Of a stretch of 64,000 nt of DNA, positions 56,701 through 59,700 are shown piece after piece. The notes below the pieces were generated by a model. The model was not told the DNA's origin, made no database searches, and saw nothing but the letters and a program-made list of their open reading frames with translations. The stretch spans positions 25,730,001-25,794,000 of the forward strand of contig OZ281497.1 in NCBI GenBank assembly GCA_965637545.1. The letters are read 5' to 3'. Both the position numbers and the translations under genes were made by a program. Every line of letters begins with the position of its first letter. Positions within the stretch are counted from its first letter, which is position 1. The stretch comes from Phallusia mammillata. Lineage: Eukaryota.

Positions 56701-59700
56701 ACGCGTTACGGCGCTTGGGGAATCCCCCCGTGACCGCTTTGCCTGGGTTGAAGACTGGCGCGACTGGCATTGTCAAAAACGCGAGTTAATTGTGTTAATT
56801 CAAAGCTTGCTTGCTCGCTGTAGGCGGTTTTTGGTAACAGGTTAACCCGAAATGTGATAGCTAACGGTAATCTCACTTCAAAGCTGTGTTTTTTATTTCC
56901 AACTCCTCCATTGTGATTTGTTACCTCGCAAATGCGTGTTGAAGTAGAGACAAGAAAAAATGTGGAAAGTTTTTTTTGTTAAGGCAATTTAACGGGTTTA
57001 AACAAGCCTACTTTGCTATCTAATACATGTAACGCTTATTCGAAATATTTGAAGCGATATTTTATTCACTTTAATAGGTGTTTACCTGTGTTTGGTCTAA
57101 TTAGTAACTCACATTATTCTTTTAAAACACATTTTGGAAAGCTAACAAATTTAAACAAGATATTGAAATACTTGAACCCCAAGTAAGCAACCTCGCATTA
57201 ATTTAATTTTTAACACATAATAAGCACCTTAACTGTATATACCTTTGCTTGGGATAATGACCTGTTTGATATCTGGTCGTTTATGATTTCCTCGCTTAGA
57301 AAAAAACTATCAAAAACGGTGTTCCAAAATCGATCGTTTCTTGTGAATTTGTGGTTATGGACTTGTCTTGTCGTTCGCATATTATACGTTTTGTAGTTTG
57401 GAGAACTTCACTTTGTGGTGCGTTCAATGATCCACATAACAGGTGATTCACGCGCTCAATGGTTTTTGCGGTTTGCATAAACAGAGCGTTCTAAGGTCAA
57501 TGCCACTTCCATTTTATGTTACTCCCTTTATGGATTTCATATCACCTCTAGGCCTCGTGTACTGAAAATAGCATTTTATTGGGAATAATATTTTTTTACG
57601 GATTGGGTAAACGTCGTTTTTTTTCGTTTCTATAATGTACAATAATTTGATTGGTTACTTATTGTATATTATCTCTTATATTACTTTTAAACATCTTTTT
57701 CAGACTAGTGTGTGTACATTTTTATAAACCCATACTTTGTAAATAGAAATGGTTTGAAAGTAGTTTGAAGTAAAAAGTCGTTTCAACCATCAATGTTGCC
57801 ATCATCAATCTTTTGTACAATTCTGCAAACTTGGTTATGACCCCTTCTATTAACTTAAGTAAACAATTTTTTAAGGCATATTGTGATTGTATTCATATAT
57901 CATACTCCGCCAGGCCAAGATACCGAATCAGCTGGTCTCCCAAGCATTCCCATATGGCAGGGGTGTCCAAACTTTTTTTAGTGGGGGCCAATTTTTGCCA
58001 GATGAAGACGCCCGCGGGCCAACGTTTTTTTTAAATTGAACACAAATATACGGGATTTAAGGAAATGGTGGGATTTTGTTGCGTCAGCACGGTGTACACT
58101 TTGCTTTTACCGGTAAATAAAGTTCCTGGAAGGCTTTTGCGTGAAGTCGCAAGTCGCCAAAACCCAAAAACGTTTTTGCGAAACAATTGAAAAACAGCCG
58201 CGGGCCACGTGAAATGTCGCCGGGGGCCGCACTTTGGACACCCCTGCCATATGGCAAGGCACAGGCTAGAAAAATCTAACCTGCGGTGGGATTCGAACCC
58301 AAGACAGAAGTCTTTCCGGGACTCGCGCTCTACCAACTGAGCTACACAGGCTCAGTTATGAACCCGCCGAAAGTCGAATCACAAGCACCGTTTCCTGCCT
58401 TGTATCCTGCGCATGTCAGCTTCGTAGTACGGGATCGCCAGTTCGACCGCTTGCCGTGCTCTCTGGTCTGCATGGACGCTTCGGGGCTGATCCCAGTATG
58501 AATATATTCATCTTTGTAATCGTATAATTGTATTTTCAGGCAAATCGGTGATCCGAAAACTTCTCAACACCGATCCAGAGAAGAGAATGAGCATCAACGA
58601 TTTCATGACCAACCCATGGGTGATGGTAAGCTACCACATTGTTTACTAAGTAACTGTTGCGCGTTTGTGCTTCGGAGTACTGTGGCAATTTCGATGTTAC
58701 TTTTTTTTCACAACAAGCTTTTAAATCTGCTAATAGGTTTGAAGCTTGTTGTGCGAATCGCCTTTAAAAGAAACATCAAAATCTACGATTCTCTTGTATT
58801 TGTTGTGAAAACATTTTAAATTCACACCCTTGACAAACTGTGTGAACCAGGAATAAACAATTTACAGTAGTTATTGTTTTGTGACATTCTCTAATGGTAA
58901 TGGGGCATCGATCTTGCCACCAGCTGCACTGATGAGACCTTACTAGTGATGGGACGGGTACCCGGTACTCGGTACTCGGTACTCGGTACTCGGTACTCGG
59001 TACTCGGTACTCGGTACTCGGTACTCGGTACTCGGTACTCGGTATCGATGGTATCGAACGATTTCAGTGGTATCGATACTCGTACTCGGTATCGAAATAT
59101 TTTGTCCCAGTTTTCGATACCAACATGCGAGTACCGAAGGTCGGTTTACAACATAAAAACACAGGCAACTTTATGCCAAATTTGCTTTGGACAACACAAA
59201 ATCGGGAAAAAGTTCCGCCCGGTTACGTATATTTTTTTCGCTATCGTGTGGAGATTACATTTTTCCGCATGTGCGTGTGTTGCACCTGTAGCCCGACTAT
59301 GGTAGATAAATTAGCCAGTGATTTATAACTAAGTACAACAATGTACTTAAGTACTCGGTAATCGTACTCGGTACTCGGTATCGAAGGTATATACATGTGG
59401 TACTCGTACTCGGTATCGGTACTCGCTTCAAAACCTGGTATCGTCCCATCACTAGACCTTACATGTCGAAATAGTGTCCACTATCTGCAGCTTACTTATC
59501 ATATTCTTTGTTATTGTGCAGGGAGCTTGCGAAGTGCCGCAGACGCCTCTATTCTCCGCTCGTGTCTTGAAAGAGGAAGAAGCACAATGGCCGGAAGTGC
59601 AGGTATAGTTTCTATATTATCTCCTATATAGCTCGTCTGAAAAGCCCGTATTGTACCAACACTTGCGATATGAATCACCCTGTCTAGTGTTTATGATGTT

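Follow-up and report, generated by a model that had tools for sequence, protein, structure and literature searches.

A type I hammerhead motif split by a hAT-type MITE in an MK2-like intron of Phallusia mammillata, probably through nested transposon insertion

Analysis of a 64-kb window of the Phallusia mammillata genome (the whole stretch of DNA analysed, to which all positions refer) revealed a type I hammerhead ribozyme motif at 58922-59492, which is split within helix II/loop II by a 511-bp transposable element and lies in an intron of an MK2-like gene. The motif is one copy of a dispersed repeat, the insert belongs to an abundant MITE family, and the intron is spliced out exactly. These data suggest that the arrangement is very likely an ordinary nested transposon insertion without host function.

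Structure of the split motif

Direct reading of the window found all coordinates and letters of the split motif to agree with the sequence. Conceptual deletion of the MITE together with one copy of its TSD (58944-59462) yields a 52-nt type I hammerhead in which all core bases are canonical (C3 U4 G5 A6 N7 G8 A9, G12 A13 A14, the pair A15.1-U16.1, and H17 not G), and the canonical core holds only with this segment removed. The reconstituted sequence given in the original prediction, obtained by removing the 511-bp MITE and one TSD, was exact to the letter, and the intact core and perfect 7-bp stem I that it described were recovered both by reading and by a type I hammerhead scanner, which was written for this analysis and applied to the window and to the insert-free sequence on both strands. 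The 5′ half (58922-58943) reads AGCTGCA-CTGATGA-GACCTTAC, and the 3′ half (59463-59492) reads ATGTC-GAAA-TAGTGTCCACTA-TC-TGCAGCT. The parts of the motif are the following:

58922-58928, + strand: helix I 5′ strand, AGCUGCA, pairing perfectly with 59486-59492
58929-58935, + strand: core C3-A9, CUGAUGA, by direct reading and scanner
58936-58943, + strand: TSD copy 1, GACCTTAC, forming the helix II 5′ strand GAC(C) and the start of loop II; identical to 59455-59462
59455-59462, + strand: TSD copy 2, GACCTTAC, with a possible local helix II hairpin with 59465-59467 (hairpin P ~0.1)
59463-59467, + strand: remaining loop II and helix II 3′ strand, A-UGUC; GGUC in the sister copies, hence a C.U mismatch in the focal copy
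59468-59470, + strand: core G12 A13 A14, by direct reading and scanner
59471-59484, + strand: helix III hairpin, A-UAGUG UC CACUA-U, 6 bp including A15.1-U16.1; CAGUGUGCACUG in the sister copies
59485, + strand: C17, with cleavage predicted between 59485 and 59486 from its position within the motif
59486-59492, + strand: helix I 3′ strand, UGCAGCU, pairing with 58922-58928

Three helices surround the core, with helix I open-ended and helix II closed by G10.1-C11.1, as in a type I hammerhead. In the insert-free motif the helices measure 7 bp (helix I), 3 bp (helix II) and 5 bp extended to 6 bp by the A15.1-U16.1 pair (helix III). Helix II is marginal: it consists of G10.1-C11.1, an A-U and a C-G pair followed by a C.U mismatch at the fourth position, so that the earlier count of only three Watson-Crick pairs in this stem was correct. 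Judged from the letters alone, no loop 1/loop 2 tertiary contact is evident; helix I is a perfect 7-bp duplex without an internal loop, its flanks are unpaired, and loop II is filled by the MITE.

Over the whole window and on both strands, the scanner found no type I motif besides the 52-nt reconstituted one. Shuffled windows contained 0.032 relaxed motifs per window, and 0.0027 when helices of at least 6, 3 and 5 bp were demanded. A search of the window as it stands, with the motif split, against Rfam at gathering level returned only a tRNA and no hammerhead. At E values up to 10, no hammerhead was returned for the 3′ half by itself or for the sister copy at 16.8 kb, and the sister copy at 51.2 kb gave a match to Hammerhead_3 (24 bits, E 0.009) that is below the cut-off of 48.5.

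Location in the MK2-like gene

Translations of the + strand form a chain of MK2/MAPKAPK-like exons which includes kinase subdomains. Evidence from sequencing runs was taken from assembled Logan contigs, in which rare alleles and rare RNA ends are lost. These contigs came from three DNA runs, each of a different study (X2, X3 and X4, with single-copy depths of about 230-360, 35-41 and 8, respectively), and from one RNA run (X14). The motif lies within the following segment of the gene:

58540-58625, + strand: MK2-like exon ending ...NPWVM, upstream of the intron, by translation; joined to 59522 in an X14 RNA contig
58626-59521, + strand: intron of 896 nt, GT..AG, from the RNA joint 58624 to 59521 (896 nt skipped, cut +1) in X14 at depth 413
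59522-59603, + strand: downstream MK2-like exon, by translation and X14 RNA contig

The RNA contig of run X14 (2748 nt, depth 413) carries the exact 58625|59522 junction, and contig depth over the unique parts of the intron is zero in this run. Correctly spliced mRNA is abundant. An intron lacking the MITE and one TSD copy would measure 377 nt. The motif is on the sense strand, C17 (59485) lies 36 nt upstream of the acceptor, and a branch-point-like CTTAC is found just downstream at 59491-59495; this placement, which had been proposed from the sequence, was upheld by the RNA contig and the translations. A 510-nt contig of run X4 aligns over 58486-58878 only, and its other 118 nt, unassigned as to side, are unaligned; it may represent a divergent haplotype.

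Identification of the insert

The insert spans 58944-59454 (511 bp) and has perfect 13-bp TIRs, TAGTGATGGGACG, which extend to 14 bp if C58943/G59455 are included. It is flanked by the 8-bp TSD at 58936-58943 and 59455-59462. The ORFs within it give only low-complexity repeat translations, and none is a real ORF. A TIR start of the YARNG type is typical of hAT elements. From the 8-bp TSD, the TIR start TAGTG (YARNG type) and the lack of a real ORF, the insert was therefore identified as a hAT-type MITE:

58944-59454, no strand assigned: hAT-type MITE, non-coding, 511 bp, with TIRs at 58944-58956 and 59442-59454 and a (GGTACTC)n array at 58957-59044; from TIRs, array and contig depth

Summed contig depth over the MITE was 1e5-1.5e6 in X2, compared with 230-360 for single-copy sequence, and the ratio was the same in X3 and X4. 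This depth, which is a sum over contigs and not a copy number, implies a MITE family of thousands of copies.

Contigs from 59427/59429 cross the junction between MITE and flank into the exon without mismatch in X2, X3 and X4, and the filled right junction is thus present in all three DNA runs. An empty allele, for which the original prediction had suggested genotyping individuals, did not turn up in them: the empty-site joint 58943 to 59463 is not among the joints listed for the three runs, which is weak evidence as it comes from assembled contigs only.

Repeat family of the hammerhead

The insert-free unit was searched against the window by blastn and the matches were built into an nhmmer profile, which gave six copies including the focal one. 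The five further fragments in the 64-kb window (E values from 1e-19 to 4e-5) share 67-77% identity with the focal copy over stretches of 49-84 nt, and hammerhead fragments account for about 0.5% of the window. The sister copies and the parts of the repeat that flank the focal hammerhead are:

51157-51248, + strand: sister copy, by blastn/nhmmer
16841-16927, - strand: sister copy, by blastn/nhmmer; in the alignment over 16841-16935 the focal copy starts at 58905
32395-32466, - strand: sister copy, by blastn/nhmmer
28374-28424, + strand: sister copy, by blastn/nhmmer
22565-22593, + strand: sister copy, by blastn/nhmmer
58905-58921, + strand: 5′ flank common to sister copies and start of the repeat fragment, from alignment with the copy at 16841-16935 (- strand)
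59493-59505, + strand: tail of the repeat family, TACTTATCATATT, with a branch-point-like CTTAC/CTTAT; common to the copies at 51k and 16k

The shared segment is about 85-90 nt long and comprises about 18 nt 5′ of helix I, the hammerhead, and a tail TACTTAYCAT.... The 5′ ends of the copies vary, falling before helix I, inside the core, at helix II or at helix III. In the bin 59471-59521, contig depth was 17842 in X2, 1712 in X3 and 537 in X4, or about 50 times the single-copy level, again as a summed contig depth that is not a copy number. The presence of six fragments in 64 kb, together with this depth over the 3′ half, marks the unit as a dispersed multi-copy repeat with variable 5′ truncation.

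Every sister copy has mutations in the core or lacks the 5′ core, and the focal copy is the sole one of the six with a fully canonical core, which counts against reading it as plain debris. The copies were compared as natural copies only, without a family consensus. Relative to its sisters, the focal copy has a G-to-T change that cuts helix II from 4 to 3 bp, a changed loop III, and a two-sided change of C-G to U-A in helix III by which pairing is kept; the latter may simply have been inherited from a subfamily.

In three distinct contigs, at about single-copy depth and one of them also found in X3, 58941/2 is followed by 59468/9 after 6-8 letters of other sequence. Such contigs represent uninterrupted paralogues, and because they join the two flanks of the MITE, the flanks are two halves of one repeat unit. 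The same joints were considered as an empty site or a hAT footprint and rejected, the 6-8 foreign letters being those of paralogues.

No ORF for an RT with GIY-YIG was found in the window, where only two ORFs reach 150 aa (both at 39188-42475). No pLTR and no head-to-head, inverted or tandem partner was found next to the focal copy, as may also be the case for a single truncated copy of a Penelope-like element. Tandem units as in retrozymes were likewise not seen, all six copies being solitary, and metagenome scans for the helix III/core pattern of the family gave no match. The repeat is probably a hammerhead-carrying retroelement of the Penelope-like or retrozyme kind, a class assignment drawn from short fragments.

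Predicted folding of the intron

Pairing probabilities were calculated with ViennaRNA on the whole intron, and the forced ribozyme fold was compared with the optimum. The TIR stem forms with P ~1.0, helix I with P 0.5-0.9 and helix III with P ~0.3. For helix II the long-range pairing has P 0.01-0.03 and the local hairpin with the second TSD copy ~0.1, in line with the earlier caveat that the duplicated GAC can form a competing hairpin. Between helix II and the TIR stem, the arm is further broken by an internal loop of 4 x 9 nt. In the optimal fold a rod pairing UGAUGAGACCUU with AUAGUGUCCACUAUC competes with the ribozyme fold, which is less stable than the optimum by 2.7 kcal/mol if the MITE is present (-217.3 versus -220.0) and by 2.5 kcal/mol if it is removed (-19.6 versus -22.1). 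As the two penalties are nearly equal, secondary-structure energetics do not penalise the insert. It had been proposed that TIR pairing loops out the insert and unites the two halves; in the folding model this is thermodynamically plausible from the TIR stem (P ~1), helix I (P ~0.9) and the 2.7 kcal/mol gap. Helix II itself has P 0.01-0.1.

Nested insertion and alternative explanations

By nested insertion, a fragment of about 90 nt of a hammerhead-carrying retroelement, truncated at its 5′ end, would have landed in sense near the 3′ end of the MK2-like intron, and a member of the hAT-type MITE family would later have inserted in helix II/loop II of this fragment, duplicating the 8 bp GACCTTAC. 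As part of the gene, the entire 896-nt intron would then be transcribed and spliced out in the ordinary way, with the ribozyme motif as a passenger, presumably a decaying copy whose core happens to remain intact. Natural hammerheads need a loop-loop contact at cellular Mg2+ (PMC6155905; PMC4209133). From the 3-bp helix II, the lack of such a contact and the 0.5-kb insert, we infer that cleavage by the split motif in the cell is most likely slight or absent. Given a MITE family with thousands of members, and hammerhead fragments that occupy about 0.5% of the window, chance alone would be expected to place a MITE within a hammerhead somewhere in the genome.

An unlikely alternative is a working discontinuous hammerhead, in which the 14-bp TIR stem extends beyond helix II, the two halves come together, and some of the pre-mRNA molecules are cleaved 36 nt upstream of the acceptor, with no particular regulatory meaning. 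The canonical core, the high probabilities of the TIR stem and helix I, and an energy gap that is about the same with or without the insert all fit this reading, as does the natural Clec2 ribozyme, which tolerates 150-1500 nt in helix I (PMC6155905). However, helix II has only 3 bp of low pairing probability, the UGAUGAGACCUU/AUAGUGUCCACUAUC rod competes in the optimal fold, and neither loop 1 nor loop 2 is left for tertiary contacts; related minimal retroelement hammerheads are poor cleavers even when intact (PMC4209133), the 5′ half has to wait about 530 nt of transcription for the 3′ half, and the mRNA is abundant and spliced correctly. A more far-reaching version, to which we give very little credence, is that the perfect TIR stem restores a closed helix II arm and thereby keeps the MITE-split copy capable of self-cleavage. 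If the genome trans-splices spliced leaders, cleavage could then free an outron-like 3′ fragment, which might acquire a spliced leader and code for no more than the MK2 C-terminal regulatory tail.

The original prediction combined a structural reading, of an intact-core type I hammerhead split in helix II/loop II by a transposon with TIRs and TSD, with a regulatory one, in which an active intronic ribozyme governs the joining of MK2 exons and is toggled between individuals by the presence or absence of the MITE. The structural reading stands; the switch found no support and is highly improbable. The sense orientation of the motif would suit it, cleavage would leave the branch point and acceptor on a different fragment from the 5′ splice site, and domesticated intronic hammerheads exist in amniotes (PMC6155905). 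Against this, no empty allele is among the listed joints of three DNA runs from three studies, splicing is normal, the motif is a dispersed repeat copy and not specific to the locus, its 3-bp helix II is weak and without a loop contact, and insertions of MITEs in hammerheads are expected by chance. A mere chance arrangement of short motifs, created by conceptually deleting the insert, was ruled out by the shuffles and by membership in a repeat family: at 0.03 relaxed motifs per shuffled window some would be met when very many windows are scanned, but helices of the observed kind are about a tenth as frequent, the window has five further copies of the 80-90 nt unit, and the paralogue contigs join exactly the two halves.

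Nothing suggests that the split motif regulates its host gene. If the split ribozyme were active, natural hammerheads would tolerate large inserts in helix II (0.5 kb here), and transposon insertion could modulate intronic self-cleavage. As the evidence stands, the main value of the nested insertion is as a caution: the Phallusia mammillata genome abounds in retroelement fragments with hammerheads and in hAT MITEs, so that intronic cores that look intact, and transposons nested in them, are expected by chance. To read them as devices of host regulation would take data on conservation or cleavage.

Comparison with known hammerheads and MITEs

Genomic hammerhead motifs occur for the most part singly and in truncated form, and they cleave weakly in vitro (Cervera & de la Pena 2014, PMC4209133). 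In Penelope-like elements the hammerheads are located near the 3′ ends/pLTRs, and the copies are mostly 5′-truncated (Craig et al. 2021, PMC8557442). The family described here shares with them the type I fold, many dispersed and mostly single 5′-truncated copies, a frequently intronic position, a location near the element 3′ end and the lack of obvious loop-loop contacts. It differs in that helix III of the focal copy is a stable 6-bp hairpin, whereas that of the metazoan min-HHR is a palindromic stub of 0-2 bp, and in that the focal locus has no RT/GIY-YIG gene, pLTR or head-to-head partner, so that membership would be by inference from the shared traits. Metazoan non-LTR retrozymes are built of units of 150-450 bp that are repeated in tandem and carry type I hammerheads (Cervera & de la Pena 2020, PMC7229834). 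With these the family has in common the type I fold, a helix III that is fairly stable, as it is in invertebrate retrozymes, and a non-coding, AT-rich context; in contrast to them, the focal and five sister copies have no tandem arrangement and no visible conserved loop 1/loop 2 interaction.

The Clec2 hammerhead of mammalian 3′ UTRs, to which the split motif had been likened, is a type III ribozyme with an insert of 150-1500 nt in helix I, conserved across mammals and experimentally active (Martick et al. 2008, summarised in PMC6155905). The analogy applies to core halves lying hundreds of nucleotides apart in one transcript and was otherwise imprecise: the focal motif is a predicted ribozyme of type I and belongs to a repeat copy whose helix II/loop II holds a recent MITE. 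HH9 and HH10, in introns of RECK and CTCL, are conserved at orthologous amniote positions with their loop-loop contacts kept (De la Pena & Garcia-Robles 2010, cited in PMC6155905). They share with the focal motif the type I fold and a position on the sense strand of an intron of a protein-coding gene, and they too derive from retroelement hammerheads, whereas the focal motif is a fragment of a repeat, does not look conserved and is broken up by a transposon.

The insert itself resembles MITEs of the hAT superfamily in its 8-bp TSD, its short TIRs starting TAG.G (YARNG), its length of about 0.5 kb, its non-coding sequence and its thousands of copies, while the internal 7-bp microsatellite is peculiar to its own family.

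Hammerhead repeat fragments

The sister hammerhead fragment at 51157-51248 (+) carries ACACTGTTTGCTT in place of the 5′ helix I strand, and this sequence is similar to the 3′ end of the hammerhead repeat unit. The fragment may be a partial-tandem junction. Through ACACUGU/ACAGUGU pairing, it gives a weak Rfam hit (24 bits, E 0.009) as a hammerhead of type III. Hammerhead repeat density in the window is about one fragment per 10 kb, and four further fragments are as follows:

16841-16927, minus strand, hammerhead repeat fragment, decayed or truncated
22565-22593, plus strand, hammerhead repeat fragment, decayed or truncated
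28374-28424, plus strand, hammerhead repeat fragment, decayed or truncated
32395-32466, minus strand, hammerhead repeat fragment, decayed or truncated

Variation in the intron and the MITE

The unique part of the MK2-like intron (58626-59521) is polymorphic. Position 58826 was heterozygous in DNA run X2 (A/C, half depth), and a contig end in the same run near ~58876 suggests a second heterozygous site close by. Alignment of a 510-nt DNA contig from run X4 spanned only 392 nt (58486-58878) and left 118 nt unaligned; this contig may represent a divergent haplotype adjoining the hammerhead fragment. Part of the MITE is a 7-bp microsatellite, (GGTACTC)n, at 58957-59044. Numerous length variants of this array were found in DNA contigs, with joints skipping 64-86 nt, and presumably come from other MITE copies.

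tRNA-like repeat

A tRNA-Ser(GGA)-like sequence, enclosed by a GC-rich repeat, was found at 58277-58515 (-) by Rfam (tRNA, 47 bits) and also by ARAGORN. Contig depth over 58400-58515 was about 1000 times single-copy in three DNA runs, and the repeat stops ~25 nt 5′ of the MK2-like exon at 58540. It looks like a high-copy tRNA-related SINE lying in the MK2-like intron before that exon.
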